A stretch of DNA of 64,000 nt from Malacoraja senta (taxonomy: Eukaryota). The stretch is taken from NCBI GenBank assembly GCA_038087875.1, contig JAXLNO010002317.1, positions 2,046,001 through 2,110,000 on the forward strand, given 5' to 3'. The notes under the pieces are model-generated. The model had not been told where the DNA came from and did not search any database. It worked only from the letters and a program-made list of their open reading frames with translations. This document shows positions 9,601 to 64,000 of this stretch, one piece after another (within the stretch, counting starts at the first letter, position 1; each line of letters begins with the position of its first letter). Made by a program: the position numbers and the translations under genes.

Positions 9601-9649
9601 CGTGAATAGCTGTAGTATACATGACATAGCCCCAGGTGTCCTATCCGTC

Positions 9650-10450: not shown

Positions 10451-10451
10451 A

Positions 10452-14657: not shown

Positions 14658-14661
14658 GAGA

Positions 14662-31660: not shown

Positions 31661-31795
31661 CTCTACCACTACACCACCATGCCGCTCTTCTACGCTCCAC
31701 ACACCAGGTCCACAGCGCAGGACAAAAGGTGTGGAAAGTGAGTCCAGTGAACTGACAGGGTGTTCACTGCTAAAGATTGTTCCTTCTCTCCTCAG

Positions 31796-34793: not shown

Positions 34794-34859
34794 GTGAGTA
34801 GACACACACTGACACATCTCTATAAACGCAGATGGATTATTGGCCCATGAGAGATGCTG

Positions 34860-35095
34860 GAATTCACTACACACACTCACTCACTCACACCTACACACAG
34901 TCTCCCTCTCTCTCACACACACACACACACATTCTCTCTGTCCCACACATAAACGCCATCACTCACACACTCTCAAACACATACACACTCTCACACACAC
35001 ACACTCACTCAAACACACACACATTCTCTCACGCGCGCACACACACACGCTCTCTCTCACACGCACTCACTCAAACACACACACACACACACCCT
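34860..35095. repeat. Compound (CA)n/(CT)n microsatellite
   Basis: Directly visible. Mirrored at ~53910-54135 and ~60335-60560. Confidence 0.9.
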
Positions 35096-36363: not shown

Positions 36364-36874
36364 GGGCCTGTCCCACGAGCATGCGACTGCATGAGGCAAG
36401 CGCGACCAAACCGGAAGCGGGGGCCGCGCGGAGGTCGAGTGATCCCCTTACAGGGCTGGTCCCACCAGCATGCGGCTGCATGCGGTGAGCGTGACCAAAC
36501 CGGAAGCGGGGGCCGCGCGGAGGTCGAGTGAATGATGTGAAGTTCGAGCGAAGTCCGCGGGAAGTTCGCGCGTGACGTACGGCGTGAAGACGTTGCGTAC
36601 GGTGTCGGGACGGTGCGTACGGTGTCGAGGCGGTGCGTGCGGCGTCGAGGCGGTGCGTGCGGCCTCCATGCAGCAGCGGGCCGGCAGGCCTTTGCCGCAC
36701 GGAATTTATGAACACTCAGTTTTTCGGAGCCCCGTGCAATGTCGGGACCAACTCCGCACAAATCCATGCGGCTCCCGCGATCAAAGTGGGACCAGCCCCG
36801 CGAGGCCGCACGGCTAGCACGACCACGTTAGGTCGTGCTTGCCGCATGCAGTCGCATGCTCGTGGGACAGGCCC
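36364..36874. mobile_element. GC-rich MITE with long TIRs (GGGCCTGTCCCACGAGCATGCGACTGCATG), flanked by TTAA
   Basis: TIRs at both ends and TTAA on both sides. Internal direct repeats. Copies at 52130-52642 and 58555-59067 arise from the duplication. Superfamily uncertain (Harbinger-like TIR core, TTAA or TA target). Confidence 0.85.
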
Positions 36875-36904
36875 TTAAGACTTCAAACAGGTGGTTCATG
36901 TTTA

Positions 36905-38650: not shown

Positions 38651-39359
38651 ATCCTCTCGCTATACAAGGATACAAAGGACATTTATTGTGACATACACCA
38701 ATTGGTGTAGTGAAATTTGACTTGCCATGCAGCACACAAATAAAGATAAGACTCAACATTAAAGAATTTTACAATAAACATAAAAACAGCTCCCCACAAT
38801 GGTTCCCACTGTGAGGGAAGGCACAAAGTCCAGTCCCCATCCCCTTGTCCACCCATAGTCGGGCCTATTGAGGCCTCTGCAGTCGGTGCTACGGTGGCCC
38901 GATGTTTCCGGCCCTCTCGCCGGGTGATGGCTCTCCGGCGTCGGGAGAACCCTCTCAGCGGCTTGGGACACCTGGAACGGCCGCTTCCTTACTGGAGACC
39001 GCGGCTTCCGAAGCCAACAGGCCGCGCTGGACGGAGCTCCACCACTGGTGATCTCGCCGAGAGATCCCAGGCTCCCGATGTTAAAGTCAGCGCCGCCGCC
39101 CGCGGCTGGCCGCTCCACGAACCCGCAGCTCCGCGATGTTCACCTGCGGTCTCAGCATTCCGGAGCTCCAGCGCAGCGACCCGGGCAAGGCATCGCCCGC
39201 TCCGCGATAGCGCTCCAGCGCTGTGCTGCCGCCGAAGCGGTGGTTCTGGCCGGTCCCGTCAGGAAACGCCGCTCCAGACCCGTTGGTAGGCTGCGAGGAC
39301 GGGTCGAAGATGCCGCCCGGAGAAAAGCTGCCTCTCCGACCGGGTAGGGTCCAGGAAGA

Positions 39360-41030
39360 GCAAGATCTTCCCTTCACAAAACCATGCTGACCGGCCCATT
39401 TTATTGTGAACTAAGTACTGCGGAACCTCTTCCTTTACAATTGATCCTAAAATCTTACCAACCACCGAAGTCAGGCTAACCGGCCTATAGTTTCCGCTCT
39501 TCTGCTTTGCTGCCTTCTTGTACAGCGGGATGATATTCGCAAATTTCCCATCTTCATGAACCACTCCTAACTCTAGTGATTCTTGAAATATCACAACTAA
39601 TGCCTCCATAATCTCCGAGGCCACCTCCTTCAGAACCCAGGGGTGCAGTCCATCCTGTCCAGGTGACTTATCCGCTCTCAGACCTTTCAGTTTTCCCAGC
39701 ACCTTCTCCTTAGTAATCGCCACTCCACTAACTTCCACCCCTGACTCTAGGATTGCAGGCACCCTGCTGGTGTCCCCCACGGTGAGGACTGATGCAAAAA
39801 AGTTATTCAATTCCTCTTCCATTTCTTGATTTCTCCTGCATCATTCTCCCAACATCCTCTTTTTATTACTCTTTATATATCTGTAGAAACTCTTGCTATC
39901 CTCTTTTACATTATTGGCCAGCTTACATTCGTACTGAAGATAGACACTAAAAAGCTGGACTAACTCAGCGGGACAGGCAGCATCTCTGGAGAGAAGGAAT
40001 GGGTGATATTTCAGGTCGAGGCCCTTCTTCAGATTGGTTAGGGATAAGGTAAACAATGGATACAGACGATGATGTCGAGAGATAAAGAACAATGAATGTA
40101 AGGTTGGAGAGCAGGAGGCATCACAGAGGGGGAGCAGTGAGAGAGGATGTGGCAGAACTGCATTGTTGTGAAAGATTGCAGCAGGATCTTGATCGATTGG
40201 CCAGATGAGCTGAGGAATGGTTGGTGGAGTGTAATACCGAGAAGTGTGAGATGTTGAATTTTGGGACATCTAACAAGAGCAGGACCTACACAGTGAATGG
40301 TGGCCTCTGGGGAGTGTTGAAGAGCAGAGAGATCAAGGAATGCAGGTGCAAGGTTCCTTCAAGATCGAGTTGCAGGAAGATCGGGTGGGCAAATGTATTG
40401 AATATAGTCAGAGTTTTGAATATAGAAGTTGGGTGATCATGTTGAGTTGTATAAGACGTTGGTAAGACCGCGTTTAGAATATTGTGTAAAGTTCTGGGCA
40501 CCATGTTATAGGAAAGATATTGTCAAGCTTGAAATGGTTCAGATATGATTTATGAGGATGCTGCTAGGACTAGAGGGTCTGAGCTATAGGGAGAGGTTGA
40601 GTCGGCTGGGTCTCCATTTCTTGGAGCGCAGGAGGATGAGGGGTGATCATATAGAGGCGTATAGATCATGAGGGGAATAGATCGGGTCGATGCACAAAAT
40701 CTTTTCCCCTTCACCTTGAACCCATGCCTAGAGTAGGCGAATCGAGGACCAGAGGACATAGGTTCAAGGTGAAGGGGAAAAGATTTAATAGGAGGGGTAA
40801 CTTTTTCATACAAAGGGTAGTTGGTGTATGGAACAAACTGCCAGAGGAGGTAGTTGAGGCAGGGATTATCCCAGCGTTTAAGAAACAGTTAGACAGGTAC
40901 ATGGATAGGACAGGTTTGGAGGGATATGGGCCATATGCGGGCAGGTGGCACTAGTGTATCTGGGACATGTTGGCTGGTGTGGGCAAATTAGGCCGAAGGG
41001 CCTGTTTCCACACTATCACCCTATGACTCC
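39360..41030. mobile_element. CR1 fragment (minus, 39360-39940), PLE pLTR fragment (minus, ~39945-40100) and CR1 3' fragment (plus, 40105-41030)
   Basis: KSPGQDGLHPWVLKE...ANIIPLYKK...NYRPVSLTSVVGK. Hammerhead motif near 40010-40035. MPRVGESRTRGH. Confidence 0.85.
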
Positions 41031-41340
41031 AACTCTCGTCGGAAAGAGGAGGAGATCCTCTTCAAGGTAGACATATCTTGAGGAGATTTTGCAGTGGAGC
41101 AGACGAAATGTGGAGGAAGGAACTGCAGGTGCTGGTTTAAACCAATGATAGACACAAAGAGCTGGAGATACTCAGCTGGTCAGGCAGCATCTCTGGAGAG
41201 AAGGAATGGGTGATGTTTCGGGTCGAGACCCTTCTTCAGGCTGGTTACATTTGTACTTCATCTTTTCTCTCCATATTGTCCTGGTTGACACGTGGAATTC
41301 TGCCGTGTTAACTCACGTTTAAACCTTTGTTTGTCTTTAG

Positions 41341-41622
41341 ATGCTCCACGGAATCTCTCAATCACTTTCCACGACGACGCAAACAGTTCCCGGGTCAGTG
41401 CAAAGGAAGGAAACTCTGCGGCGATCCTCTGCTCCGTCCAGAGTTTCCCAACATCCAACATGACGTGGAGACATCTCGGTGTCACGCTGAACACAACACG
41501 TTCCAGCAACGAGCTGTGGATGGAGTTCCCTCAGCTGACACGGCAGGATGCCGGGGTCTATCAGTGTGTGGCAGAGAATGAACACGGGACAGCAGAGAGG
41601 GATGTGACCCTCACTGTAGAAT
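41341..41622 (+). CDS. Siglec/MAG-like gene, intact Ig domain-3 exon (D3b)
   Basis: ctttag acceptor and gtgagt donor, 282 bp, phase 1-1. APRNLSIT...ILCSVQSFPTSNMTW...DAGVYQCVAENEHG. Confidence 0.92.
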
Positions 41623-42424
41623 GTGAGTAGACACACACTGACACGTCCCTCAAAACATCATAAGATCATAAGTGATAGGAGCAGAATTAGATTGCCGAAT
41701 GGCCAAGTCTACTCCGCCATTCAATCATGACTGATCTATCTCTCCCTCCTAACCCCATTCTCCTGCCTTCTCATTGAGCCATAGTCAGAGTCATAAAGTC
41801 TTAGAGTGATACAGCGTGGAAACAGGCCCTTTGGCTCAACTTGCTTTCAACGGCCTACATGTCCCAGCTACATTAGTCCCACCTGCCCACGTTTGGCCCT
41901 TATCCCTTCAAACTTGTCATATCCATGTCTGTTTCAACTACCTCCTCTGGCAGTTGAAAAAGGAGGTCATACTACCTCCTCTGTATGAAAAAGTCACCAA
42001 CTGGATTCCTATTTAATCTTTTCCCCTTCACCTTGAACCAATGTCCTCTGGTCCTCGATTCACCTACTCTGTGCAAGAGACTTGGTGCGTCTTCCCGATC
42101 TATTCCCATCATGATTTTGTACACCTCTGTAAGATCACCCCTCATCCTCCTGCGCTCCAAGGAATAGAGTCCCAGCCTGCTCAACCTCTCCCTATAGCTC
42201 AGGCCCTCGAGTCCTGGCCACATCCTCGTAAATCTTCTCTGTACCCTTTCCTGCTATACAACATATTTCCTATATTTCCTCTCTCCTCTTCTGAGATGAG
42301 GAAGATTAAATAAAGTTATTTGAAGCATTGTGAAGCAGTTCTGGTCACCACATTACAGGAAGGATGTGGCCAGGGTGCAGAATGCTGCCTGGATTAGAGA
42401 GTATTAGCAATAAGGAGTTTTAAG

Positions 42425-42740
42425 GAGGGCTCAGTGGTTCAATGGTAGAGTTGCTGCCTCACAGCACCAGAGAGCCGTGTTTGATCCTGACTACGGATGC
42501 TTGTCTCTTGGGAGTTTGTAAGTTCACCTCATGACCTGTGTGGGTTTTCTCCGGGTGCTCCGGTTTCCTCCCACACTCAAGTCGTACAGGTTTGTAGGTT
42601 AATTGACTTGTTATATTTGTAAATTGTCCCTAGTGTGTGTGGGATAGTGTAAGTGTGCGGGGATCGCTGGTCGGCGTGGACAAGGTGGGCCGAAGGGCCT
42701 GTTTCTGCTCTGTATCTCTAAACTAAATGAAACTAAAGAA
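42425..42740 (+). mobile_element. V-SINE (HE1-like)
   Basis: Degenerate A/B boxes, V core and tail. Confidence 0.8.
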
Positions 42741-43062
42741 GAGGTTGGAAAGATTTGGATTGTTTTCCATGGAGTTCATAAGGTCATAAGTGATAGGAGC
42801 AGAATTAGGCCATTCGGCCCATCGAGTCAGAATGAGGCCATTCGGCCCATTCATTCATGGCTGATCTATCTCTCCCTCCTAACCCCATTCTCCTGCCTTC
42901 TCCCCATAACCTCTGACACCCGTACTAATCAAGAATCTATCTATCTCTGCCTTAAATATATCCACTGACTTGGCCTCCACTGCCGTCTGTGGCAATGAAT
43001 TCCACAGATTCACCACCCAGTTCAAAGGCTGAGGGGAGACCCGATATAAATATATAAAACTA

Positions 43063-43560
43063 CTAGACTAAGTGGGACCCGTTGGGTCCCATTCTGACAT
43101 GGGATGGCTGGTCCCCCAACGCAATATTCCACCACTCACCCATAGCCCCCAACTGCGCAGGCACGGCTGAGGGGTTCCTGTTGTGACGCTCCTGATACCC
43201 CCTAACCCCCCCCCCACTCCGCCCCTTGCCCTTCCACCTCCCCCCCCCCCCCCCCCACGCACTCACTCCACCCTCCCATCCATTCTTTGCCGCTCTCTGG
43301 CGGCACAACCATTCCCGCCCATTGGCTTCCCATTGTGACGTAGAATACATAGATACATACGCAGGCATTACTGCACAGGCACAGCTGACGGGCATGGCAA
43401 GCGGAAAAGGACTATATTAATGCTTAAAATGTGAGTAACTTAAAATACAACAACAATTTGAACGTTAAAGATGAGATTTATTCAGTTCAGTTCTTTCTTG
43501 TTGCGTCTCTTGTTGCATTCTGCTGCTAACTGCATCTCGAAGTCTCTTTGCTGTTGATGA
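43063..43560 (-). mobile_element. Helitron-like non-autonomous element (3' end supported; 5' end uncertain)
   Basis: Minus strand ends GGGACCC-AAC-GGGTCCC hairpin (43074-43090), then ACTTAGT-CTAG|T. Confidence 0.55.
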
Positions 43561-43837
43561 AAAAAAGTAATCTTCCTAAAGAAACTCCCTTTAATTCCGA
43601 GACTGTGACCTCTGGTCCTTGACTCTCCCATAGTGGAAACATCCTCTGCACAACGACTCTATCCAGGCCTCTGCCTGCACGTGATCCATATCCCTCCAGC
43701 ATCTGCAGTTCCTCCCTACACTAATCAAATCAATGGTACACTGACAAGCTCATCTGTCCTTCATTGATGAGACACTGCTTTGGATACAGGTACAAAAGAC
43801 ACAAAGTGCTGGAGGAACTGAGAGTCATAGAGTCTTA

Positions 43838-44262
43838 TGCCCCTGTCCCACTTAGGAAACCTGAACGGAAACCTCTGGAGACTTTGCGCCCCACCCAAGG
43901 TTTACGAGCGGTTCCCGGAGGTTTTTGTCAGTCTCCCTAATGGTCGAAAGTGGTTGCCGCTTCCATGTTCCGGCAATTATTTCAAAAAATTCAAAACCGG
44001 CCGCGACTAAAAATAGGTTGCCATTTAAAAAATCGGTTATATTTTAGTCAAAGCCGGTTGCGATGCTAGTTGAAGGTGGTTGCCGGAGGTTGCAGGTAGT
44101 TACCTTCCACTACCTGCAACCTCAGGCAAACACATGCAACCTCCGGCAACCACCTTCAACTAGCATCGCAACCGGCTTCGACTAAAAAAATTACCGGACG
44201 TTTTTTAATTTTTTTAAATAATCGCCGGAACATACAAGAAGCAGAAACCACTTTCGACCATT
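43838..44262. mobile_element. Truncated MITE-like element with a ~320-bp internal palindrome
   Basis: Left end gcccctgtcccactt resembles the 36364 TIR core. Arms 43939-44099 and ~44110-44262 are reverse complements. Confidence 0.65.
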
Positions 44263-44383
44263 CGTGGTCAACGCGGACTTGATAGGCCGAAGGTCCTTTT
44301 TCCGCGCTGTATCTCTGAACAACATAGAAATTGTGTGAACGGGTGATCGGTGGTCGGCGAGGACACGGTGGGCCGAAGATCGA

Positions 44384-45298
44384 AGTTTCCCAGCATCTAA
44401 CCTGATGTGGGAACATCTCGGTATCACGCTGAACACAACACGTTCCAGCAACGAGCTGTGGATGGAGTTCCCTCAGCTGACACGGCAGAACTACTATCTA
44501 AATGGCATCAAGTTGGGAAAAGGGGAAGTACAACGGGATCTGGGGGTCCTTGTACATCAGTCTATGAAAGTAAGCATGCAGGTACAGCAGGCAGTGAAGA
44601 AAGCGAATGGCATGTTGGCCTTTATAACAAGAGGAATCGAATATAGGAGCAAAGCGGTCCTTCTGCAGTTGTACAGGGCCCTAGTGAGACCACACCTGGA
44701 GTATTGTGTACAGTTTTGGTCACCTAATTTGAGGAAGGACATTCTTGCTATTGAGAGAGTGCAGCGTAGGTTTACAAGGTTAATTCCCGAGATGGCGGGA
44801 CTGTCATATGCTGAGAGAATGGAGCAGCTGAGCTTGTATACTCTGGAGTTTAGAAGAATGAGAGGGAATCTCATTGAAACATATAAGATTGTTAAGGGTT
44901 TGGACATGCTAGAGGCAGGAAACATGTTTCCGATGTTGGGGGAGTCCAGAACCAGGGGCCACAGTTTAAGAATAAAGAGTAAACCATTTGGAACGGAGAT
45001 GAGGAAACACTTTTTCACACAGAGAGTGGTGAGTCTGTGGAATGTGTAGGAATGTGGAGGCGGTTCTCTGGATGCTTTCAAGAGAGAGCTAGATAGGGCT
45101 CTTAAAAATAGCGGAGTCAGGGGAAATGGGGAGAAGGCTGGAACGGGGTACTGATTGGGGATGATCAGCCATGATCACATGGCTCGAAGGGCCGAATGGC
45201 CTACTCCTGCACCTATTGTCTATTGACGCCGGAGTCTATCAGTGTGTGGCGGAGAATGAACACGGGACAGCAGAGAGGGATGTGACCCTCACTGTAAT
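44384..45298 (+). pseudogene. Third Ig domain-3 exon copy (D3c), 5'-truncated and split by CR1
   Basis: 44384-44488 (SFPASNLMWEHLGITLNTTRSSNELWMEFPQLTRQ) and 45225-45298 (DAGVYQCVAENEHG...) are separated by a CR1 3' fragment. 2-bp deletion before the gtgagt donor. Confidence 0.88.
44489..45224 (+). mobile_element. CR1 LINE 3' fragment inserted in D3c
   Basis: YYLNGIKLGKGEVQRDLGVLVH...RPHLEYCVQFWSP...GESRTRGH, followed by the 3' UTR. Confidence 0.95.
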
Positions 45299-46214
45299 GT
45301 GAGTAGACACACACTGACACATCTCTATAAACGCAGATGGATTATTCTCTATAGAGGCAGATGAGAACTGCATATCCTTTCTTATTCGTTCTCTCCTAGC
45401 AAAGAGCTACCAATTACCTGTTTCCTTTATCATCATTACATTTTTGCCTATCTTTAATTCATTTGTTCTATATCTCTCTATGCCATCGTCTATATCTCTC
45501 ATTTCCCTTACCCGTGACTTTCAATCTGAAGAAAGGTCTCAACACAAAACGTCACCCATTCCTTCTCTCCAGAGATGCTGCCTGTCCCGCTATGTTGCTG
45601 CAGCATTTTGTGTCTATCTTCGGTTTAAACCAGCATCTGCAGTTCCTTCCTACACACACAAACACACACACTCACTCACTCACACTCGCTCGCTCGCTCA
45701 CTCACTCACTCACTCACTCACTCACTCACACCCACACATATTATCTTTAGTTTATGTGAGAAAGAACTGCAGATGCTGGATATAATCGAAGATAGGCACA
45801 AAATGCTGGAGTAAATCAACGGGTGAGGCAGCATCTAAAGAGAGAAGGAATGGGTGACCTTTCCGGTCGAGACCCTTCTTCCGACTGATGTCGGGGGGGG
45901 TGGGAAAAATAGAAAGTGGGCGGAGACACTTGGACATAGGCAGTGATGGAAATGGGTTTTAGGAACTAGGGGTACTCTAAGGTGGGGGGGGGGTTTATGT
46001 GCGGTCATACCCATGTAAGAGTACAAGAATGTATAACTCGTTTATTGTGTATTTATAATATAGTTTATTTTGTATTATATGTCATAACTGCTTTCTTGCA
46101 TCTCTCTCTCTATCCATCTCTCTCTCTCTCTCTCTCTCTGTGTTGGCTGCAGCTATCGTCTGCTTCGGTGAGGGAAGCAGGTCGATGATTGATCAAAAGG
46201 CCCCTAGGAGACTG

Positions 46215-46385
46215 TGTTTGATTGGCCGCCGAGTGACCAGCACATTATGTGATTGGACACAATGCCCTTGGAGAGGGCGGCTGATTGGACAGGAGGAGAC
46301 CGATTTGTTGATTGGATGGGAAATTTAAGGGAAACTGGTCAGTGATTGGACGCAACCCCCTTAGAGACAGCGGTTGATTGGCCGC
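46215..46385 (-). promoter_or_regulatory. Array of six co-oriented CCAAT boxes
   Basis: TGATTGG with ATTGG starting at 46221, 46252, 46284, 46311, 46345 and 46377. Confidence 0.5.
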
Positions 46386-46675
46386 CAAATAATCGGGCAC
46401 AAAAAAATTGAAAATAGGAAATCAATAAAATCGGAATTACGATTTAAATCGGAAGAATATCATGCCCGCTCTGCAGCAAATATACTAGTATCTGCTCTAG
46501 TATCTTTGATCTGCTGTTCCTTCCTATTGAAGAAGAACCCTGGCCCGAAACAACTCCTTATCCATTCCCTCCACAGATGCCGCCCAGCCCGCTGAGTTCC
46601 TCTAGCACTCTGTGTTTTTTATTTAACTCTTGAAATTGAAGTTAGACCATGGCTGTCCGGACCGCACCCCCCATA

Positions 46676-46875
46676 NNNNNNNNNNNNNNNNNNNNNNNNN
46701 NNNNNNNNNNNNNNNNNNNNNNNNNNNNNNNNNNNNNNNNNNNNNNNNNNNNNNNNNNNNNNNNNNNNNNNNNNNNNNNNNNNNNNNNNNNNNNNNNNNN
46801 NNNNNNNNNNNNNNNNNNNNNNNNNNNNNNNNNNNNNNNNNNNNNNNNNNNNNNNNNNNNNNNNNNNNNNNNNNN
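46676..46875. other. Assembly gap (200 N)
   Basis: Run of N; the round length suggests a placeholder of unknown true size. Confidence 0.98.
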
Positions 46876-47181
46876 ATGGATATGACAAGTTTGAAGGGAT
46901 AAGGGCCAAACGTGGGCAGGTGGGACTAATGTAGCTGGGACATGTAGGCCGTTGAAAGCAAGTTGAGCCAAAGGGCCTGTTTCCACGCTGTATCACTCTA
47001 AGACTTTATGACTCTGACTCTATGGCTCAATGAGAAGGCAGGAGAATGGGGTTAGGAGGGAGAGATAGATCAGTCATGATTGAATGGCGGAGTAGACTTG
47101 GCCATTCGGCAATCTAATTCGGCTCCTATCACTTATGATCTTATGATGTTTTGAGGGACGTGTCAGTGTGTGTCTACTCAC

Positions 47182-47463
47182 ATTCTACAGTGAGGGTCAC
47201 ATCCCTCTCTGCTGTCCCGTGTTCATTCTCTGCCACACACTGATAGACCCCGGCATCCTGCCGTGTCAGCTGAGGGAACTCCATCCACAGCTCGTTGCTG
47301 GAACGTGTTGTGTTCAGCGTGACACCGAGATGTCTCCACGTCATGTTGGATGTTGGGAAACTCTGGACGGAGCAGAGGATCGCCGCAGAGTTTCCTTCCT
47401 TTGCACTGACCCGGGAACTGTTCGCGTCGTCGTGGAAAGTGATTGAGAGATTCCGTGGAGCAT
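47182..47463 (-). CDS. Siglec-like copy 2, intact domain-3 exon (D3b type)
   Basis: 282 bp with AG/GT boundaries; same translation as 41341-41622. Confidence 0.9.
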
Positions 47464-50400
47464 CTAAAGACAAACAAAGGTTTAAACGTGAGTTAACACG
47501 GCAGAATTCCACGTGTCAACCAGGACAATATGGAGAGAAAAGATGAAGTACAAATGTAACCAGCCTGAAGAAGGGTCTCGACCGAAACATCACCCATTCC
47601 TTCTCTCCAGAGATGCTGCCTGACCAGCTGAGTATCTCCAGCTCTTTGTGTCTATCATTGGTTTAAACCAGCACCTGCAGTTCCTTCCTCCACATTTCGT
47701 CTGCTCCACTGCAAAATCTCCTCAAGATATGTCTACCTTGAAGAGGATCTCCTCCTCTTTCCGACGAGAGTTGGAGTCATAGGGTGATAGTGTGGAAACA
47801 GGCCCTTCGGCCTAATTTGCCCACACCAGCCAACATGTCCCAGATACACTAGTGCCACCTGCCCGCATATGGCCCATATCCCTCCAAACCTGTCCTATCC
47901 ATGTACCTGTCTAACTGTTTCTTAAACGCTGGGATAATCCCTGCCTCAACTACCTCCTCTGGCAGTTTGTTCCATACACCAACTACCCTTTGTATGAAAA
48001 AGTTACCCCTCCTATTAAATCTTTTCCCCTTCACCTTCAACCTATGTCCTCTGGTCCTCGATTCCCCTACTCTAGGCATGGGTTCAAGGTGAAGGGGAAA
48101 AGATTTTGTGCATCTACCCGATCTATTCCCCTCATGATCTATACGCCTCTATATGATCACCCCTCATCCTCCTGCGCTCCAAGAAATGGAGACCCAGCCG
48201 ACTCAACCTCTCCCTATAGCTCAGACCCTCTAGTCCTAGCAGCATCCTCATAAATCATATCTGAACCATTTCAAGCTTGGCAATATCTTTCCTATAACAT
48301 GGTGCCCAGAACTTTACACAATATTCTAAACGCGGTCTTACCAATGTCTTATACAACTCAACATGATCACCCAACTTCTATATTCAAAACTCTGAATATA
48401 TTCAATACATTTGCCCACCCGATCTTCCAGCAACTCGATCTTCAAGGAACCTTGCACCTGCATTCCTTGATCTCTCTGCTCTTCAACATTCCCCAGAGGC
48501 CACCATTCACTGTGTAGGTCCTGCTCTTGTTAGATGTCCCAAAATTCAACATCTCACACTTCTCGGTATTACACTCCACCAACCATTCCTCAGCTCATCT
48601 GGCCAATCGATCAAGATCCTGCTGCAATCTTTCACAACAATGCAGTTCTGCCACATCCTCTCTCACTGCTCCCCCTCTGTGATGCCTCCTGCTCTCCGAC
48701 CTTACATTCATTGTTCTTTATCTCTCGACATCATCGTCTGTATCCATTGTTTACCTTATCCCTAACCAATCTGAAGAAGGGCCTCGACCTGAAATATCAC
48801 CCATTCCTTCTCTCCAGAGATGCTGCCTGTCCCGCTGAGTTAGTCCAGCTTTTTTGTGTCTATCTTCAGTACGAATGTAAGCTGGCCAATAATGTAAAAG
48901 AGGATAGCAAGAGTTTCTACAGATATATAAAGAGTAAAAAAAGAGGATGTTGGGAGAATGATGCAGGAGAAATCAAGAAATGGAAGAGGAATTGAATAAC
49001 TTTTTTGCATCAGTCCTCACCGTGGGGGACACCAGCAGGGTGCCTGCAATCCTAGAGTCGGGGGTGGAAATTAGTGGAGTGGCGATTACTAAGGAGAAGG
49101 TGCTGGGAAAACTGAAAGGTCTGAGAGCGGAGAGCTGGACAGGATGGACTGCACCCCAGGGTTCTGAAGGAGGTGGCCTCGGAGATTATGGAGGCATTAG
49201 TTGTGATATTTCAAGAATCACTAGAGTTAGGAGTGGTTCATGAAGATGGGAAATTTGCGAATATCATCCCGCTGTACAAGAAGGCAGCAAAGCAGAAGAG
49301 CGGAATCTATAGGCTGGTTAGCCTGACTTCGGTGGTTGGTAAGATTTTAGGATCAATTGTAAAGGAAGAGGTTACGCAGTACTTAGTTCACAATAAAATG
49401 GGCCGGTCAGCATGGTTTTGTGAAGGGAAGATCTTGCCTAATGAATCTGCTGGAGTTCTTTGAGGAAGTTAATACCTGGACATCAGACAGGGGTGGCTAT
49501 GGATGAAAGAAAGCAAATGGCATGTTGGCCTTCATAGGGCTGCCCAGCCTGCAGCTGTCTGCCTTTTCACTTTCTTTTATTTTTTAGTGTGTTAAAAAGT
49601 GTTTTGTTTGGAGGTCTATTCTTGTTTATGTGGGGGGTGGGAAACTGCTCTTCCTGGTCCCTACCCGGTCGGAGAGGCAGCTTTTCTCCGGGCAGCATCT
49701 TCGACCCGTCCTCGCAGCCTACCAACGGGTCTGGAGCGGCGTTTCCTGACGGGACCGGCCAGAACCACCGCTTCGGCGGCAGCACAGCGCTGGAGCGCTA
49801 TCGCGGAGCGGGCGATGCCTTGCCCGGGTCGCCGCGCTGGAGCTCCGGAATGCTGAGACCGCAGGTGAACATCGCGGAGCTGCGGGTTCATGGAGCGGCC
49901 AGCCGCGGGCGGCGGCGCTGACTTTAACATCGGGAGCCTGGGATCTCTCGGCGAGATCACCAGTGGTGGAGCTCCGTCCAGCGCGGCCTGTTGGCTTCGG
50001 AAGCCGCGATCTCCAGTAAGGAAGCGGCCGTTCCAGGTGTCCCAAGACGCTGAGAGGGTTCTCCCGACGCCGGAGAGCCATCACCCAGCGAGAGGGCCGG
50101 AAACATCGGGCCACCGTAGCACCGACTGCAGAGGCCTCAATAGGCCCGACTATGGGTGGACAAGGGGATGGGGACTGGACTTTGTGCCTTCCCTCACAGT
50201 GGGAACCATTGTGGGGGGATGTTTTTATGTTTATTGTAAAATTCTTTAATGTTGAGTCTTATCTTTATTTGTGTGCTGCATGGCAAGTCAAATTTCACTA
50301 CACCAATTGGTGTATGTCACAATAAATGTCCTTTGTATCCTTGTATAGCGAGAGGATTTGAGAAAGGAGCAAGGTGGACCTATTGCAGTTATACAGGGCC

Positions 50401-53400
50401 CTGGTGAGACCGCACCTGGAGTATTATGTGCAGTTTTGGTCTCCTAATTTGAGGAAGGACATTCTTGCTATTGTGGGAGGGCAGCGTAGGTACTGTCATG
50501 GCGGGACTGTCATAGGATGAAAGAATGGATTGACTGGGCTTGCATTCGCTGGAATTTAGAATTTAGAATTTAGAGAGAGAATCTTATAGAATCTTATAGA
50601 AACATATAAAATTCTTAAAGGATTCGATAGGCTAGATGCAGGAAAAATGTTCCTGATGTTGGTGGAGTCCAGAACCAGGGGTCACAGTTTAAGAATAAGG
50701 GGTCATCCATTTAGGACTGAGTTGAGGAAAAACCTTTTCACCCAGAGAGTTGTGAGTCGGTGGAGGCTGGATGTTTTCAAGAGAGAGTTAGATTTAGCTC
50801 TTAGGGTTAACGGAATCAAGGGATATGGGGAGAAAGCAGGAACGGGTCACTGATTTTGGATGAATAACCGTGATCATATTGAATAGTGGTGCTGGCTGGA
50901 AGGGCCGAATGGCCTACTCCTGCACCTATTTTTTATGTTTCTATGTTTCTTTCCCTAGATTAGGTGCCGTATGTCAGTCTGCTGGGGAAGATGAGAGACC
51001 ATGGTATTAAAGGGAAGATACTAGCATGGATAGCGGGTTGGCTGGATGGCAGAAAGCAAAGAGTTGCGATAAAAGGAGCTTTTTCATGTTGGCTGCCAGT
51101 GTCCAGTGGAGTTCCTCAAGGGTCGGTGCTGGGGCCACTTCTCTTCATGTTGTATAGTAATGATTTGGATAAGGGGATTGAAGACTTTGTGGCCAAGTTT
51201 GCCGATGATGCTGAGGTAGATAGCGTAGAGAAAGCAAGGACTCTGCAGAAGGACTTGGACAGGTTATGAGAGTGGGTAGAGAAGTAGCAGATGAAATTCA
51301 GTATTGCAAAGTGTGGAGTCATGCATTTTGGTAATAAGAGTAAAGGCGTAGAGTATTTTCTAAATGGAGAGAGAATGCAGAAATCAGAGGTGCAAAGGGA
51401 CTTGGGAGTGCTGGTACAGGACTCCCAAAAAGTTAATTTGCAAGTTGAATCGGTAGTAAGGAAGGCAAATTCAATGCTAGCATTTATATCAAGAGGTCTG
51501 GAATACAAAAACAGAGATGTAATGCTGAGGCCCCATAAGGCGCTGGTCAGGCTGCATTTGGAATATTGTGAGCAAATTTGGGCCCCATATCTGAGGAAGG
51601 ATGTGCTGGCTCTGGAGAGGGTCCAGAGGAGGTTTACAAGAATGATTCCAGGAATGAGTGGGATAGCATATGATGAGCGCTTGCCAGCACTGGGCCTCCA
51701 CTCACTGGAATTTAGTAGGTTGGGTGGGGGACCTCATTGAAACTTACAGAATAATGAAAGGCATGTGGATGTGGAAAGATTGTTTCAACTGGTGGGAGAG
51801 TCCAGCACCAGAGGACATAGCGTCAGAATTAAATGGCGCTCTTTTAGAAAGGAGGTGAGAAGGAACTTCTTTAGTCAGAGGGTAGTTAATCTGTGGAACT
51901 CATTGCCACAGAGGGCTGTGGAGGCCGAGTCAATGGATATTTTTAAGGCAGAGATAAACAAGTTCTTGATTAGAACAAGTGTCAAGGGTTATGGGGAGAA
52001 GGAAGGAAAATGGGATTAGGAGGTAGAGCCATGATTGAATGGCAGAGTAGACTCGATGGGCCGAATGGCCTAATTCTATTCCTATAACTTGTGATCTTGT
52101 AAACATGAACCACCTGTTTGAAGTCTTAAGGGCCTGTCCCACGAGCATGCGACTGCATGCGGCAAGCACGACCTAACGTGGTCGTGCTAGCCGTGCGGCC
52201 TCGCGGGGCCGGTCCCACTTTGATCGCGGGAGCCGCATGGATTTGTGCGGAGTTGGTCCCGACATCGCACGGGGCTCCGAAAAACTGACAGTGTTCATAA
52301 ATTCCGTGCGGCAAAGGCCTGCCGGCCCGCTGCTGCATGGAGGCCACACGCACCGCCTCGACGCCGCACGCACCGCCTCGACACAGTACGCACCGTCCCG
52401 ACACCGTACGCAACGTCTTCACGCCGTACGTCACGCGTGAACTTCCCGCGGACTTCGCTCGAACTTCACATCATTCACTCGACCTCCGCGCGGCCCCCGC
52501 TTCCGGTTTGGTCGCGCTCACCGCATGCAGCCGCATGCTGGTGGGACCGGCCCTGTAAGGGGATCACTCGACCTCCGCGCGGCCCCCGCTTCCGGTTTGG
52601 TCGCGCTTGCCTCATGCAGTCGCATGCTCGTGGGACAGGCCCTTAAAGGCGATACTATATTACCTTCTCATTGAAACAAGATACTATATAAACATTCATG
52701 ATAGACACAAAGTGTTGGAGTAACGCAGCGGGTCAGGAGCATCTCTGGAAAAAAGGAATAGGTGGCGTTTCGCGTCGAGACCCTTCTTCAGACTGAGAGT
52801 CGGAGAGCGGGAAACGAGAGATATCGATGGCACAAATGAAAGATATGCAAAAGCAACGATGATCAGGAAAAACGTCGAGCCCACAATGGTCCATTGTTGG
52901 CTCTGGGGTAGGTGATAACGAGTTATACAGACAATGAAACTCAAGAGGACAACAGTAAATAAAATACCTTTGTCACCTACCCTTGTTCTCCAGGATTGGA
53001 GGCATGAGCTACAGGGAGGTTGGGGCAGGCTGGGACTCTATTCCTCGGAGGGCAGGTGGATGAGGGGTGATCTTATAGAGGTGTACAAAATTATTGGGAG
53101 GAATTGATCGGGTAGACACACAAAGTCTCTTGCCCAGAGTAGGGGATTCGAGGACCAGAGGACTTAGGTTTAAGAGAGGGGAAAAGATTTAATGGAACCT
53201 GAGGGTAACATTTTTCCACACAAAGTGTGGTGGGTGTATGGAACGAGCTGCCGGAGGAGGTAGTTGAGGCTGGGACTATCCCAGCGTTTAAGAAATAGTT
53301 GAACAGGTACATGGATAGGATAGGTATGAGGGATATGGGCCAAATGCAGGCATGTGGGACTAGTATAGATGGGGCATGTTGGCTGGTTGACTCCATCTAC

Positions 53401-54207
53401 ACTTCACGCTGCCTTGGCAAGGCCAGCAGCAAAATCAAGGACGAGTCGCTCCCCCGCCACTCCCTCTTCTCCCCTCGGGCAAGAGGTACAGCAGTGTGCA
53501 AACGCACACCTCCAGATTCAGGGACAGTTTCTTTCCAGCTGTTATCAGGCAACTGAACCATCCCACCACAACCAGAGCACAGTCCTGAATTACTATGGTG
53601 CTATCTTTGATAGGACTTCACTGGCTTTTTCTTGCACTAAACATTATTCCCTTGAAGCATTGAGAGGCATTGAGGGTTTCTGGGTAGAAAGACCAATATG
53701 ATCCAACAATGTCAGGCAGAGGTCAGACAGGCTACATACAGGTAGGGAACACAAAAGATTGTAGATGTGGGTGGCACGGTGGCGCAGTGGGTAGAGCTGC
53801 TGCCTCACAGCGCTATCGACCCGGGTTCGATCCTGACCACCGGTGCCTGTCTGTATGGAGTTTGCACATTCTCCCCGTGACCTGCGTGGGTTTTCTCCGA
53901 GATCTTGAGGGTGTGTGTGTGTGTGTGTTTGAGTGAGTGCGTGTGAGAGAGAGCGTGTGTGTGTGCGCGTGTGAGAGAATGTGTGTGTGTTTGAGTGAGT
54001 GTGTGTGTGTGAGAGTGTGTATGTGTTTGAGAGAGTGTGTGAGTGATGGCGTTCATGTGTGGGACAGAGAGAATGTGTGTGTGTGTGTGTGAGAGAGAGG
54101 GAGACTGTGTGTAGGTGTGAGTGAGTGTGTGTAGTGAATTCCAGCATCTTTCATGGGCCAATAATCCATCTGCGTTTATAGAGATGTGTCAGTGTGTGTC
54201 TACTCAC

Positions 54208-54489
54208 ATTCTACAGTGAGGGTCACATCCCTCTCTGCTGTCCCGTGTTCATTCTCCGCCACACACTGATAGACCCCGGCATCCTGCCGTGTCAGCTGAG
54301 GGAACTCCATCCACAGCTCGTTGCTGGAACGTGTTGTGTTCAGCGTGACACCGAGATGTCTCCACGTCAGGTTGGATGTTGGGAAACTCTGGACGGAGCA
54401 GAGGATCGCCGCAGAGTTTCCTTCCTTTGCACTGACCCAGGAACTGTTCGCGTCATCGTGGAAAGTGATTGAGAGATTCCGTGGAGCAT
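54208..54489 (-). CDS. Siglec-like copy 2, extra intact domain-3 exon (hybrid D3b/D3a)
   Basis: 282 bp, open, AG/GT boundaries. NSSWVS and SNLTW are D3a-type residues. Upstream intron is D3b-type and downstream intron is D3a-type. Confidence 0.85.
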
Positions 54490-57400
54490 CTAAAGACAAA
54501 CAAAGGTTTAAACGTGAGTTAACACGGCAGCGTCTAACTGTTTCTTAAACGCTGGGATAATCCCTGCCTCAACTACCTCCTCTGGCAGTTTGTTCCATAC
54601 ACCAACTACCCTTTGTATGAAAAAGTTACCCCTCCTATTAAATCTTTTCCCCTTCACCTTGAACCTATGTCCTCTGGTCCTCGATTCCCCTACTCTAGGC
54701 ATGGGTTCAAGGTGAAGGGGAAAAGATTTTGTGCATCTACCCGATCTATTCCCCTCATGATCTATACGCCTCTATATGATCACCCCTCATCCTCCTGCGC
54801 TCCAAGAAATGGAGACCCAGCCGACTCAACCTCTCCCTATAGCTCAGACCCTCTAGTCCTAGCAGCATCCTCATAAATCATATCTGAACCATTTCAAGCT
54901 TGACAATATCTTTCCTATAACATGGTGCCCAGAACTTTACACAATATTCTAAACGCGGTCTTACCAACGTCTTATACAACTCAACATGATCACCCAACTT
55001 CTATATTCAAAACTCTGACTATATTCAATACATTTGCCCACCCGATCTTCCTGCAACTCGATCTTCAAGGAACCTTGCACCTGCATTCCTTGATCTCTCT
55101 GCTCTTCAACACTCCCCAGAGGCCACCATTCACTGTGTAGGTCCTGCTCTTGTTAGATGTCCCAAAATTCAACATCTCACACTTCTCGGTATTACACTCC
55201 ACCAACCATTCCTCAGCTCATCTGGCCAATCGATCAAGATCCTGCTGCAATCTTTCACAACAATGCAGTTCTGCCACATCCTCTCTCACTGCTCCCCCTC
55301 TGTGATGCCTCCTGCTCTCCGACCTTACATTCATTGTTCTTTATCTCTCGACATCATCGTCTGTATCCATTGTTTACCTTATCCCTAACCAATCTGAAGG
55401 GCCTCGACCTGAAATATCACCCATTCCCTCTCTCCAGAGATGCTGCCTGTCCCGCTGAGTTAGTCCAGCTTTTTAGTGTCTATCTTCAGTACGAATGTAA
55501 GCTGGCCAATAATGTAAAAGAGGATAGCAAGAGTTTCTACAGATATATAAAGAGTAAAAAAAAGAGGATGTTGGGAGAATGATGCAGGAGAAATCAAGAA
55601 ATGGAAGAGGAATTGAATAACTTTTTTGCATCAGTCCTCACCGTGGGGGACACCAGCAGGGTGCCTGCAATCCTAGAGTCGGGGGTGGAAATTAGTGGAG
55701 TGGCGATTACTAAGGAGAAGGTGCTGGGAAAACTGAAAGGTCTGAGAGCGGATAAGTCACCTGGACAGGATGGACTGCACCCCAGGGTTCTGAAGGAGGT
55801 GGCCTCGGAGATTATGGAGGCATTAGTTGTGATATTTCAAGAATCACTAGAGTTAGGAGTGGTTCATGAAGATGGGAAATTTGCGAATATCATCCCGCTG
55901 TACAAGAAGGCAGCAAAGCAGAAGAGCGGAATCTATAGGCTGGTTAGCCTGACTTCGGTGGTTGGTAAGATTTTAGGATCAATTGTAAAGGAAGAGGTTA
56001 CGCAGTACTTAGTTCACAATAAAATGGGCCGGTCAGCATGGTTTTGTGAAGGGAAGATCTTGCTCTTCCTGGACCCTACCCGGTCGGAGAGGCAGCTTTT
56101 CTCCGGGCGGCATCTTCGACCCGTCCTCGCAGCCTACCAACGGGTCTGGAGTGGCGTTTCCTGACGGGACCGGCCAGAACCACCGCTTCGGTGGCAGCAC
56201 AGTGCTGGAGCGCTATCGCGGAGCGGGCGATGCCTTGCCCGGGTCGCCGCGCTGGAGCTCCGGAATGCTGAGACCGCAGGTGAACATCGCGGAGCTGCGG
56301 GTTCGTGGAGCGGCCAGCCGCGGGCGGCGGCGCTGACTTTAACATCGGGAGCCTGGGATCTCTCGGCGAGATCACCAGTGGTGGAGCTCCGTCCAGCGCG
56401 GCCTGTTGGCTTCGGAAGCCGCGGTCTCCAGTAAGGAAGCGGCCGTTCCAGGTGTCCCAAGCCGCTGAGAGGGTTCTCCCGACGCCGGAGAGCCATCACC
56501 CGGCGAGAGGGCCGGAAACATCGGGCCACCGTAGCACCGACTGCAGAGGCCTCAATAGGCCCGACTATGGGTGGACAAGGGGATGGGGACTGGACTTTGT
56601 GCCTTCCCTCACAGTGGGAACCATTGTGGGGGGCTGTTTTTATGTTTATTGTAAAATTCTTTAATGTTGAGTCTTATCTTTATTTGTGTGCTGCATGGCA
56701 AGTCAAATTTCACTACACCAATTGGTGTATGTCACAATAAATGTCCTTTGTATCCTTGTATAGCGAGAGGATTTGAGAAAGGAGCAAGGTGGACCTATTG
56801 CAGTTATACAGGGCCCTGGTGAGACCGCACCTGGAGTATTATGTGCAGTTTTGGTCTCCTAATTTGAGGAAGGACATTCTTGCTATTGTGGGAGGGCAGC
56901 GTAGGTACTGTCATGGCGGGACTGTCATAGGATGAAAGAATGGATTGACTGGGCTTGCATTCGCTGGAATTTAGAATTTAGAATTTAGAGAGAGAATCTT
57001 ATAGAATCTTATAAAATCTTATAGAAACATATAAAATTCTTAAAGGATTCGATAGGCTAGATGCAGGAAAAATGTTCCTGATGTTGGTGGAGTCCAGAAT
57101 CAGGGGTCACAGTTTAAGAATAAGGGGTCATCCATTTAGGACTGAGTTGAGGAAAAACCTTTTCACCCAGAGAGTTGTGAGTCGGTGGAGGCTGGATGTT
57201 TTCAAGAGAGAGTTAGATTTAGCTCTTAGGGTTAACGGAATCAAGGGATATGGGGAGAAAGCAGGAACGGGTCACTGATTTTGGATGAATAACCGTGATC
57301 ATATTGAATAGTGGTGCTGGCTGGAAGGGCCGAATGGCCTACTCCTGCACCTATTTTTTATGTTTCTATGTTTCTTTCCCTAGATTAGGTGCCGTATGTC

Positions 57401-60400
57401 AGTCTGCTGGGGAAGATGAGAGACCATGGTATTAAAGGGAAGATACTAGCATGGATAGCGGGTTGGCTGGATGGCAGAAAGCAAAGAGTTGCGATAAAAG
57501 GAGCTTTTTCATGTTGGCTGCCAGTGTCCAGTGGAGTTCCTCAAGGGTCGGTGCTGGGGCCACTTCTCTTCATGTTGTATAGTAATGATTTGGATAAGGG
57601 GATTGAAGACTTTGTGGCCAAGTTTGCCGATGATGCTGAGGTAGATAGCGTAGAGAAAGCAAGGACTCTGCAGAAGGACTTGGACAGGTTATGAGAGTGG
57701 GTAGAGAAGTAGCAGATGAAATTCAGTATTGCAAAGTGTGGAGTCATGCATTTTGGTAATAAGAGTAAAGGCGTAGAGTATTTTCTAAATGGAGAGAGAA
57801 TGCAGAAATCAGAGGTGCAAAGGGACTTGGGAGTGCTGGTACAGGACTCCCAAAAAGTTAATTTGCAAGTTGAATCGGTAGTAAGGAAGGCAAATTCAAT
57901 GCTAGCATTTATATCAAGAGGTCTGGAATACAAAAACAGAGATGTAATGCTGAGGCCCCATAAGGCGCTGGTCAGGCTGCATTTGGAATATTGTGAGCAA
58001 ATTTGGGCCCCATATCTGAGGAAGGATGTGCTGGCTCTGGAGAGGGTCCAGAGGAGGTTTACAAGAATGATTCCAGGAATGAGTGGGATAGCATATGATG
58101 AGCGCTTGCCAGCACTGGGCCTCCACTCACTGGAATTTAGTAGGTTGGGTGGGGGACCTCATTGAAACTTACAGAATAATGAAAGGCATGTGGATGTGGA
58201 AAGATTGTTTCAACTGGTGGGAGAGTCCAGCACCAGAGGACATAGCGTCAGAATTAAATGGCGCTCTTTTAGAAAGGAGGTGAGAAGGAACTTCTTTAGT
58301 CAGAGGGTAGTTAATCTGTGGAACTCATTGCCTCAGAGGGCTGTGGAGGCCGAGTCAATGGATATTTTTAAGGCAGAGATAAACAAGTTCTTGATTCGAA
58401 CAAGTGTCAAGGGTTATGGGGAGAAGGAAGGAAAATGGGATTAGGAGGTAGAGCCATGATTGAATGGCGGAGTAGACTCGATGGGCCGAATGGCCTAATT
58501 CTATTCCTATAACTTGTGATCTTGTAAACATGAACCACCTGTTTGAAGTCTTAAGGGCCTGTCCCACGAGCATGCGACTGCATGCGGCAAGCACGACCTA
58601 ACGTGGTCGTGCTAGCCGTGCGGCCTCGCGGGGCCGGTCCCACTTTGATCGCGGGAGCCGCATGGATTTGTGCGGAGTTGGTCCCGACATTGCACGGGGC
58701 TCCGAAAAACTGACAGTGTTCATAAATTCCGTGCGGCAAAGGCCTGCCGGCCCGCTGCTGCATGGAGGCCGCACGCACCGCCTCGACGCCGCACGCACCG
58801 CCTCGACACCGTACGCACCGTCCCGACACCGTACGTAACGTCTTCACGCCGTACGTCACGCGCGAACTTCCCGCGGACTTCGCTCGAACTTCACATCATT
58901 CACTCGACCTCCGCGCGGCCCCCGCTTCCGGTTTGGTCGCGCTCACCGCATGCAGCCGCATGCTGGTGGGACCGGCCCTGTAAGGGGATCACTCGACCTC
59001 CGCGCGGCCCCCGCTTCCGGTTTGGTCGCGCTTGCCTCATGCAGTCGCATGCTCGTGGGACAGGCCCTTAAAGGCGATACTATATTACCTTCTCATTGAA
59101 ACAAGATACTATATAAACATTCATGATAGACACAAAGTGTTGGAGTAACGCAGCGGGTCAGGAGCATCTCTGGAAAAAAGGAATAGGTGGCGTTTCGCGT
59201 CGAGACCCTTCTTCAGACTGAGAGTCGGAGAGCGGGAAACGAGAGATATCGATGGCACAAATGAAAGATATGCAAAAGCAACGATGATCAGGAAAAATGT
59301 TGAGCCCACAATGGTCCATTGTTGGCTCTGGGGTAGGTGATAACGAGTTATACAGACAATGAAACCCAAGAGGACAACAGTAAATAAAATACCTTTGTCA
59401 CCTACCCTTGTTCTCCAGGATTGGAGGCATGAGCTACAGGGAGGTTGGGGCAGGCTGGGACTCTATTCCTCGGAGGGCAGGTGGATGAGGGGTGATCTTA
59501 TAGAGGTGTACAAAATTATTGGGAGGAATTGATCGGGTAGACACACAAAGTCTCTTGCCCAGAGTAGGGGATTCGAGGACCAGAGGACTTAGGTTTAAGA
59601 GGAGAGGGGAAAAGATTTAATGGAACCTGAGGGTAACATTTTTCCACACAAAGGGCGGTGGGTGTATGGAACGAGCTGCCGGAGGAGGTAGTTGAGGCTG
59701 GGACTATCCAGGCGTTTAAGAAACAGTTGAACAGGTACATGGATAGGATAGGTATGAGGGATATGGGCCAAACGCAGGCATGTGGGACTAGTATAGATGG
59801 GGCATGTTGGCTGGTTGACTCTATCTACACTTCACGCTGCCTTGGCAAGGCCAGCAGCAAAATCAAGGACGAGTCGCTCCCCCGCCACTCCCTCTTCTCC
59901 CCTCGGGCAAGAGGTACAGCAGTGTGCAAACGCACACCTCCAGATTCAGGGACAGTTTCTTTCCAGCTGTTATCAGGCAACTGAACCATCCCACCACAAC
60001 CAGAGCACAGTCCTGAATTACTATGGTGCTATCTTTGATAGGACTTCACTGGCTTTTTCTTGCACTAAACATTATTCCCTTGAAGCATTGAGAGGCATTG
60101 AGGGTTTCTGGGTAGAAAGACCAATATGATCCAACAATGTCAGGCAGAGGTCAGACGGGTTACATACAGGTTGGGAACACAAAAGATTGTAGATGTGGGT
60201 GGCACGGTGGCGCAGTGGGTAGAGCTGCTGCCTCACAGCGCTATCGACCCGGGTTCGATCCTGACCACCGGTGCCTGTCTGTATGGAGTTTGCACATTCT
60301 CCCCGTGACCTGCGTGGGTTTTCTCCGAGATCTTGAGGGTGTGTGTGTGTGTGTGTTTGAGTGAGTGCGTGTGAGAGAGAGCGTGTGTGTGTGCGCGCGT

Positions 60401-60629
60401 GAGAGAATGTGTGTGTTTGAGTGAGTGTGTGTGTGTGAGAGTGTGTATGTGTTTGAGAGTGTGTGAGTGATGGCGTTTATGTGTGGGACAGAGAGAATGT
60501 GTGTGTGTGTGTGCGTGAGAGGGAGACTGTGTGTAGGTGTGAGTGAGTGTGTGTAGTGAATTCCAGCATCTCTCATGGGCCAATAATCCATCTGCGTTTA
60601 TAGAGATGTGTCAGTGTGTGTCTACTCAC

Positions 60630-61051
60630 ATTCTACAGTGAGGGTCACATCCCTCTCTGCTGTCCCGTGTTCATTCTCCGCCACACACTGATAGACCCCG
60701 GCATCCTGCCGTGTCAGCTGAGGGAACTCCATCCACAGCTCGTTGCTGGAACGTGTTGTGTTCAGTGTGACACCAGGGGGTATGGAGAGAAGGCAGGTAC
60801 AGGATACTGAGTTGGATGATCAGCCATGATCATATTGAATGGCGGTGCAGGCTCAAAGGGCTGAATGGCCTACTCCTGCACCTATTTTCTATGTTTCTAT
60901 GTTTCTATGACACCGAGATGTCTCCACGTCAGGTTAGATGCTGGCAAACTCTGGATGGAGCAGAGGATCACTGCAGAGTTTCCTTCCTTTATACTGACCC
61001 AGGAATTGTTCACGTTGTTGGGGGAAGTGATTCAGAGATTCTGGGGGGCAT
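60630..61051 (-). pseudogene. Siglec-like copy 2, disrupted D3a exon
   Basis: Same TGA and same CR1 insertion as 34372-34793. Confidence 0.9.
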
Positions 61052-63627: not shown

Positions 63628-64000
63628 CTGAGGAGAGAAGGAACAATCTTTAGCAGTGAACACCCTGTCAGTTCACTGGACTCACTTTCCACACCTTTTG
63701 TCCTGCGCTGTGGACCTGGTGTGTGGAGCGTAGAAGAGCGGCATGGTGGTGTAGTGGTAGAGCCTCCCTCCTCACCGCCCCTCCCACAGTGTGTCACTCC
63801 CTCCTCACTACTCCTCCCACAGTGCTTCACTCCCTCCTCACCGCCCCTCCCAGTGTGTCACTCCCTCCTCACCGCCCCTCCCACAGTGTGTCACTCCCTC
63901 CTCACCGCCCCACCCACATTGTGTCACTCCCTCCTCACCGCCCCTCCCAGTGTGTCACTCCCTCCTCACCGCCCCTCCCAGTGTCACTCCCTCCTCACAG

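Follow-up and report, generated by a model that had tools for sequence, protein, structure and literature searches.

The stretch of DNA analysed here (hereafter the window) comprises 64 kb of the Malacoraja senta genome, interrupted by a single gap of 200 N at positions 46676-46875. It contains two versions of a skate gene related to the sialic acid-binding immunoglobulin (Ig)-like lectins (Siglecs), which are ~99.4-99.8% identical and lie tail to tail across this scaffold gap. The left copy (L) is encoded by the plus strand and the right copy (R) by the minus strand, so that the two converge on the gap. According to its translation and its Pfam matches, the gene is composed of an exon for a V-set domain, an exon for a C2-set domain (D2) and a series of I-set exons of a common type (D3). 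The two copies differ by one Ig-domain-coding unit of 6.4-7.0 kb, consisting of an exon plus an intron. L contains one such unit plus 179 bp, arranged along the plus strand in the order D3a pseudo-exon, one intron, D3b. R contains two units plus 179 bp, arranged along the minus strand in the order D3a pseudo-exon, intron B, hybrid exon, intron A, D3b. The single intron of L is a mosaic of the two introns of R, a structure that may have arisen through the loss of one unit by unequal crossover. The features of the two copies are as follows:

31796-32164 (369 bp), plus strand: V-set exon of the left copy, with the YYFRVNF motif (open reading frame, splice sites, Pfam)
33155-33448 (294 bp), plus strand: D2 exon (C2-set) of the left copy (Pfam, exon limits read from the sequence)
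34372-34793, plus strand: D3a pseudo-exon of the left copy, with a TGA codon and a short interspersed nuclear element (SINE); AG and GTGAGT splice sites kept
34649-40765, plus strand: B-like part of the left unit, i.e. the second half of D3a and most of the intron, with the 211-bp junction at 39359-39363
40766-40894, plus strand: interval holding the B-to-A switch in the left copy (alignment and permutation tests)
40895-41340, plus strand: A-like end of the left intron, with the 404-bp segment kept (40895-41299)
41341-41622 (282 bp), plus strand: D3b exon of the left copy, intact, phase 1-1 (Pfam I-set, 9e-13)
44384-45296, plus strand: D3c remnant of the left copy, a third D3-type exon
46676-46875, no strand: scaffold gap of 200 N, into which both copies point
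47182-47463 (282 bp), minus strand: D3b exon of the right copy (Pfam I-set)
47464-54207, minus strand: intron A of the right copy, retaining both the 404-bp (47505-47908) and the 211-bp (49438-49648) segment
54208-54489 (282 bp), minus strand: hybrid exon of the right copy, intact (Pfam I-set)
54490-60629, minus strand: intron B of the right copy, lacking the 404-bp (junction 54530/1) and the 211-bp (junction 56060-56063) segment
60630-61051, minus strand: D3a pseudo-exon of the right copy, with a TGA codon (61032-61034) and a SINE (60775-60907)

The V-set exon is recognized by the Pfam models V-set (2.6e-11) and Ig_CD22 (2.5e-07). In both copies, it contains the motif GPYYFRVNF with the strand-F arginine that is conserved in Siglecs as the sialic acid-binding residue. 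The D2 exon matches C2-set_2 (7.9e-10), and both D3b and the hybrid exon match I-set (~1e-12). The three intact D3 exons, comprising the two D3b exons and the hybrid exon, are each 282 bp long, one base pair shorter than the 283 bp given initially, and share phase 1-1 as well as AG and GTGAGT splice sites. The left and right D3b exons encode an identical protein sequence, from which the product of the hybrid exon deviates by the exchanges R>W and M>L. The hybrid exon owes its name to its composite nature, with the upstream flank and the first half being D3b-type and the 3' site and downstream intron being D3a-type. Within the second half of the exon (E2), its first site is still D3b-type, and its second site and the sequence downstream are D3a-type. 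This succession of D3b-type and D3a-type sites is the expected trace of an earlier unequal crossover in E2.

D3a, initially taken to be half an exon, turned out to be a whole exon that is disrupted identically in L and R. Common to both copies are an in-frame TGA codon (34389-34391 in L, 61032-61034 in R) and a 133-bp SINE (34516-34648 in L, 60775-60907 in R) with a 7-bp target duplication, GGTGTCA. The repeated unit, which is ~99% identical, starts exactly at the 3' target-site copy of this SINE inside D3a (34649 and 60774, respectively), and the identity between D3a and D3b drops from 98-99% in the second half of the exon to ~85% in the first. The SINE thus seems to mark the border of a conversion or crossover tract. 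At the opposite end of the unit, the intron downstream of the left D3b exon follows the unit for 34 bp past the donor site and then gives way to a SINE-like element starting with CATAAGATCATAAGTGATAGGAGC (41657-41780), at which the repeated unit has its 3' limit. Further downstream, 2.7 kb from the left D3b exon, lies the D3c remnant. It has lost the 5' part of the exon, is split after the sequence ...QLTRQ by the insertion of a long interspersed nuclear element (LINE) of ~0.74 kb (~44489-45224) and lacks 2 bp before its donor site; the 50 bp that follow are of the D3a/hybrid type. No transmembrane or tail exon was detected after D3 in the region 41927-46675 by tblastn with 258-267 proteins of the family. 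Since both copies run into the gap, these exons may simply be unassembled.

Self-BLAST of the window yields two inverted matches, one between L 31425-40894 and R 64000-54532 (99.27% identity) and the other between L 39360-41926 and R 49437-46876 (98.87%), as well as a direct repeat inside the right arm, formed by A 49646-54352 and B 56061-60774 (98.79%). The right arm starts at the exact edge of the gap (46876) and continues past the end of the window. The locus thus displays two hallmarks of non-allelic homologous recombination, namely tandem direct repeats (98.8% alike between A and B) and versions that are exactly one unit apart. Together with a three-way MAFFT alignment of the reverse-complemented L 34649-41656, A 47148-54352 and B 54174-60774, the self-BLAST results bear out the copy structures proposed in the original prediction, with two introns and a hybrid exon in R and one intron in L. 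The two large indels described there were also recovered. The 211-bp segment of A, which the alignment places at 49435/8-49645/8, is absent from both B and L, with the junctions reported earlier, which are the same in the two introns and, read directly, carry TGC microhomology. The 404-bp segment is present in A (47505-47908) and L (41299-40895) and is missing from B at 54530/1. However, these indels do not by themselves require recombination, because they could equally stem from a duplication after which A gained one segment by insertion and B lost the other by deletion.

The pairwise distances amount to 0.61% for L/B, 0.77% for A/B and 0.98% for L/A. At the D3b end, L and A differ by one single-nucleotide polymorphism (SNP) in 761 bp, and the first 9-10 informative sites, which extend over the D3b exon with its flanking sequence and reach the border of the 404-bp segment, all group L with A. 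From L 40765 on, 36 sites show L identical to B and not to A, as compared to 11-12 sites at which L is identical to A and not to B and another 25 that are private to L. The first site of the former class lies at L 40765, in agreement with the limit of ~40760 suggested earlier for the match between the left intron and B. In a MaxChi permutation test, the break falls between L 40895 and L 40765 (p = 0.0002), and a permuted walk similar to that of 3SEQ gives p = 0.0025. The alignment with recombination test therefore reveals a single significant switch, where the absence of any switch would have spoken against the proposed recombinant. If the exchange preceded the loss of the 404 bp from B, the interval that contains it may reach as far as 41375. 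Thus, the left intron is a mosaic of the two introns of R with a single switch, being B-like for ~6.1 kb and A-like for its last 0.76 kb, including D3b. It cannot be a consensus made from introns A and B of R, as L has 25 private SNPs and seven private indels. These private SNPs, which compare with 12 private to B, cluster in runs, e.g. at L 39742-39423 and 38074-37419.

Three sequences form a star, so that branch patterns alone cannot show which of them are related. We therefore searched for shared derived characters, with the D3c remnant and further copies of the transposons from other parts of the window serving as outgroups. Three further outgroups were tried and set aside: the syntenic locus of Amblyraja radiata, in which D2 is broken and no D3 exons follow in the next 18 kb; the Leucoraja erinacea locus, a paralogue with a spacing of 2.2 kb between its D3 exons; and, for the start of the intron, the sequence downstream of D3c, whose homology ends ~50 bp past the exon. 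One such character is the 211-bp segment. A LINE reverse-transcriptase frame, QHGFVKGRSC, runs 13 codons into this segment in A, reading LMNLLEFFEEVNT, and the continued frame matches another LINE copy in the window, with the match ending at the junction in B and L. Since the frame continues in A only, the absence of the 211 bp represents a derived deletion common to L and B. About 20 SNPs could also be polarized. Among them are eight derived states common to L and B, which are spread along the intron, and six common to L and A, all of them less than 200 bp from the D3b end. At the eight polarized sites at which A and B agree against L, the derived state is found in L in every case and never in A and B (0/8). 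In addition, the alignment of the exons shows that both D3b exons carry a derived C (Arg), a derived A (Met) and a derived GCA, which are absent from the hybrid exon, D3a and D3c. Contigs from four public sequencing runs, apparently of other skates, have the non-D3b letter at position 47344 in 100% of the depth and at position 47231 in ~75-100% of the depth. Because the polarized SNPs, the 211-bp deletion and the exon codons agree, the split between the hybrid exon and D3b is older than the split between L and R, and we favour the view that the two-unit state would predate the separation of the two copies.

These characters can be arranged into a plausible history. The ancestral stalk would have consisted of D3a, an intron and D3b. 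D3a would then have been killed by the stop codon and the insertion of the SINE, after which an unequal crossover in the second half of the D3 exon may have generated the two-unit version, D3a(psi)-B-hybrid-A-D3b. Subsequently, A and B would have diverged, with B losing the 211 bp and D3b acquiring R and M through two amino-acid changes, before the L and R versions separated. A second unequal homologous crossover, this time between intron B and intron A and ~0.45-0.6 kb upstream of D3b, would finally have removed one whole unit and given rise to the one-unit left version. The order of these events, and the unequal rather than equal nature of the exchange, are what we infer from the characters described above. 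With respect to the original prediction, which saw in L a B-to-A recombinant produced by contraction, the mosaic is upheld by the permutation test (p = 0.0002) and the polarized sites; contraction by unequal crossover along the lines sketched here is the history that we favour, short of proof and with about an even chance of being the right one.

Several observations weigh against this history. The tree of the three sequences is a star whose distances are not clock-like (25 private SNPs in L vs 12 in B), and the divergence between L and B is twice that between the flanks of L and R (0.31%). The switch weakens to p = 0.03 in the permutation test if the second half of the exon is left out, as was done in one test because the D3a-type state in this region could be positional. 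Moreover, several of the outgroup calls depend on a single transposon copy at 70-80% identity, and contigs from public runs could not verify either of the assembled contigs. The twofold number of private SNPs in L compared to B could be explained by A-to-B conversion within R, or it may reflect a faster L lineage.

A different route to the same sequences starts from two diverged one-unit haplotypes, x, with the 211 bp deleted and W/L in D3b, and y, with the 211 bp kept and R/M in D3b. An unequal crossover between them in the second half of the D3 exon would have expanded the locus to the two-unit R, and L would be a one-unit x haplotype that received the D3b end of y by equal crossover or gene conversion. 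This expansion requires the same number of recombination events as contraction, accounts for every polarized character and tolerates both the non-clock-like distances and the twofold L/B divergence, and it would be natural if the copies were alleles in a recombining population. However, it demands that two independent exchanges fall within ~0.85 kb of each other in a region of more than 10 kb, fits poorly with copies that are paralogues on a single chromosome and postulates pure x or y haplotypes that lack direct evidence, making it, in our judgement, unlikely although far from negligible. It is also conceivable that L truly contains two units and that the assembler threaded from the B unit into the A unit, as the collapse of a tandem repeat yields a B-to-A chimera with one switch that looks like the product of a crossover, and the left contig ends just 5 kb downstream, within an array of D3 exons that is rich in repeats. 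Yet, the units are ~0.8% apart and distinguished by the 211-bp and 404-bp indels over 6.4-6.8 kb, which long accurate reads resolve easily. In addition, the switch is single and clean, with no consensus mixture, and the polarizable sites within the B-like part at which L equals A are changes private to B, so that we consider a collapse quite improbable. A simple scenario, in which a tandem duplication private to R took place after the split, A then gained an insertion, B suffered a deletion and no recombinant was involved, is compatible with the two large indels taken alone. It would, however, require the 211 bp to have been deleted twice with identical junctions and microhomology, and it predicts that the hybrid exon shares the derived R and M of D3b, which it lacks, that the branches of A and B are equal, as opposed to the 36 vs 12 sites observed, and that there is no switch. 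The exon codons, the switch statistics and the shared derived 211-bp deletion thus led us to reject it as next to impossible.

Another question, which cuts across all of these readings, is whether the two copies represent two genes or two haplotypes. We consider it somewhat more likely than not that the right contig represents the other haplotype of the locus, which was retained in the primary assembly and which the scaffolder flipped and placed beside its partner, implying that there is one gene with a heterozygous polymorphism in unit number. The inverted match has its start right at the edge of the gap (46876), neither copy has 3' exons and both are directed towards the gap, their flanks have diverged by just 0.31% (0.15-0.2% outside CpG), and the region upstream of the left copy is collinear with the Amblyraja radiata locus. 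In heterotype false duplications, a gap that separates copies within one scaffold has been described as a typical sign, and haploid-level depth and haplotype-specific k-mers are the defining tests (Ko et al., 2022; PMC9516828); the near-identical copies described here are likewise separated by a gap within one scaffold. On the other hand, a true palindrome would look no different if its centre had been left unassembled, the right contig extends past the end of the window, and the depth was unreadable, since transposon unitigs swamped the mapping of the public contigs. These Logan contigs, which are ~100 bp long and apparently stem from several other or closely related skates, share 0.36-0.59 of the words. 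They were mapped to R 46876-52875 only, where the transposon unitigs led to depths of 1e3-1e7 and only the sites in the D3b exon were informative; no joint was listed at the 211-bp or 404-bp sites in this transposon-swamped mapping of ~100-bp contigs. As a caution, wherever this assembly shows inverted near-identical gene pairs at gaps of 200 N, the read depth needs to be checked before they are taken for gene duplicates.

The flanks of the two copies offer some further observations. Two of their ten SNPs change an amino acid, with K/E in the V-set exon at 31951 and K/Q in the D2 exon at 33379. Immediately upstream of the V exon, both copies contain a tandem repeat of ~60-70 bp (31172-31659 and 63764-64000), which is also present at the Amblyraja radiata locus (9309-9981 of the extracted sequence). 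The latter (CM021408.1:7175478-7204564, reversed) is syntenic, over positions 5513-10947, with the left upstream region, the V exon and D2 up to its codon 36. The DNA identity ranges from 84 to 95% over this part, and the homology then stops. The annotated model of 292 amino acids runs on into unrelated sequence, and the next 18 kb contain no D3 exons.

At the protein level, the two versions may encode receptors whose stalks are one Ig domain apart. This difference hinges on the skipping of D3a, on 3' exons past the contig ends and on expression. As D3a has kept consensus splice sites, its inclusion would put a stop codon into the message. In the RNA runs, only 0.07 of the words of the V exon were present, and these runs thus provided no evidence of expression. 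The length of the stalk sets the reach of the lectin domain from the membrane and, with it, the choice between ligands on the same cell and those on other cells. A natural pair differing by one Ig domain would therefore offer a handle on the stalk-length question in an early-branching vertebrate, and it would show how a large, undescribed elasmobranch family gains and loses domains. We would suggest, as a tentative and on balance doubtful extension, that the domain number segregates as a polymorphism, with one crossover having re-made a four-domain receptor from the surviving exon after the loss of D3a and a second one having given a three-domain allele, so that a single animal would possess two stalk lengths of one lectin. 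If true, a polymorphism of stalk length at the level of exons would thereby be described for the first time for a Siglec of a cartilaginous fish. From a methodological point of view, the locus illustrates that large indels alone do not prove recombination and that their polarization with a transposon frame and older exon copies carries most of the argument.

Annotated elasmobranch relatives of the gene carry names such as 'sialic acid-binding Ig-like lectin 13/12/10' or 'myelin-associated glycoprotein-like' and possess 1 to 8 D3-type domains; in close skate relatives, a D3a-type domain is followed by a D3b-type domain. The Malacoraja gene resembles this Siglec/MAG-like family in having a V-set, then a C2-set and then D3-type domains, with identities to skate relatives of 74-77% for V, 85-90% for D2 and up to 92% for D3. 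It differs in that its first D3 exon is dead and that membrane and tail exons do not lie in the window. No annotated or transcript-derived protein of the gene itself was found, the best identity for the V domain being the 74-77% mentioned. A Leucoraja erinacea paralogue (JAMYXN010001531.1) contains two D3 exons at a distance of 2.2 kb (14323-14670 and 16536-16883), which are 98.6% identical over 348 bp and separated by unlike sequence, and it has a transmembrane exon. It is an independent case of D3 duplication or homogenization. Given the variable domain counts and this paralogue, the gain, loss and homogenization of D3 exons are common in the family.

Outside this family, the long homologous repeats of CR1 and the kringle IV-2 repeats of LPA are known to form intragenic unit-number alleles by unequal crossover. 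The skate locus shares with them tandem units of several kilobases that are made up of exons plus introns and highly identical, predicted changes in protein length by whole domains and hybrid units that mark the exchange. In contrast to these systems, just one or two units are present, the gene is a Siglec-like gene of a skate, and its two versions are putative alleles. Changes in domain number and hybrid genes generated by non-allelic homologous recombination are also known from KIR, LILR and the SIGLEC14/SIGLEC5 fusion allele. Similar to the gene described here, these are Ig-superfamily receptors in fast-evolving clusters, with exchange in near-identical stretches and concerted evolution of parts of exons. 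However, they involve the joining of neighbouring genes or the deletion of genes, whereas the exchange considered here would have taken place between two introns of one gene. Thus, unequal crossover that changes the number of domain units is a well-known type of event, and it is the gene that is new.

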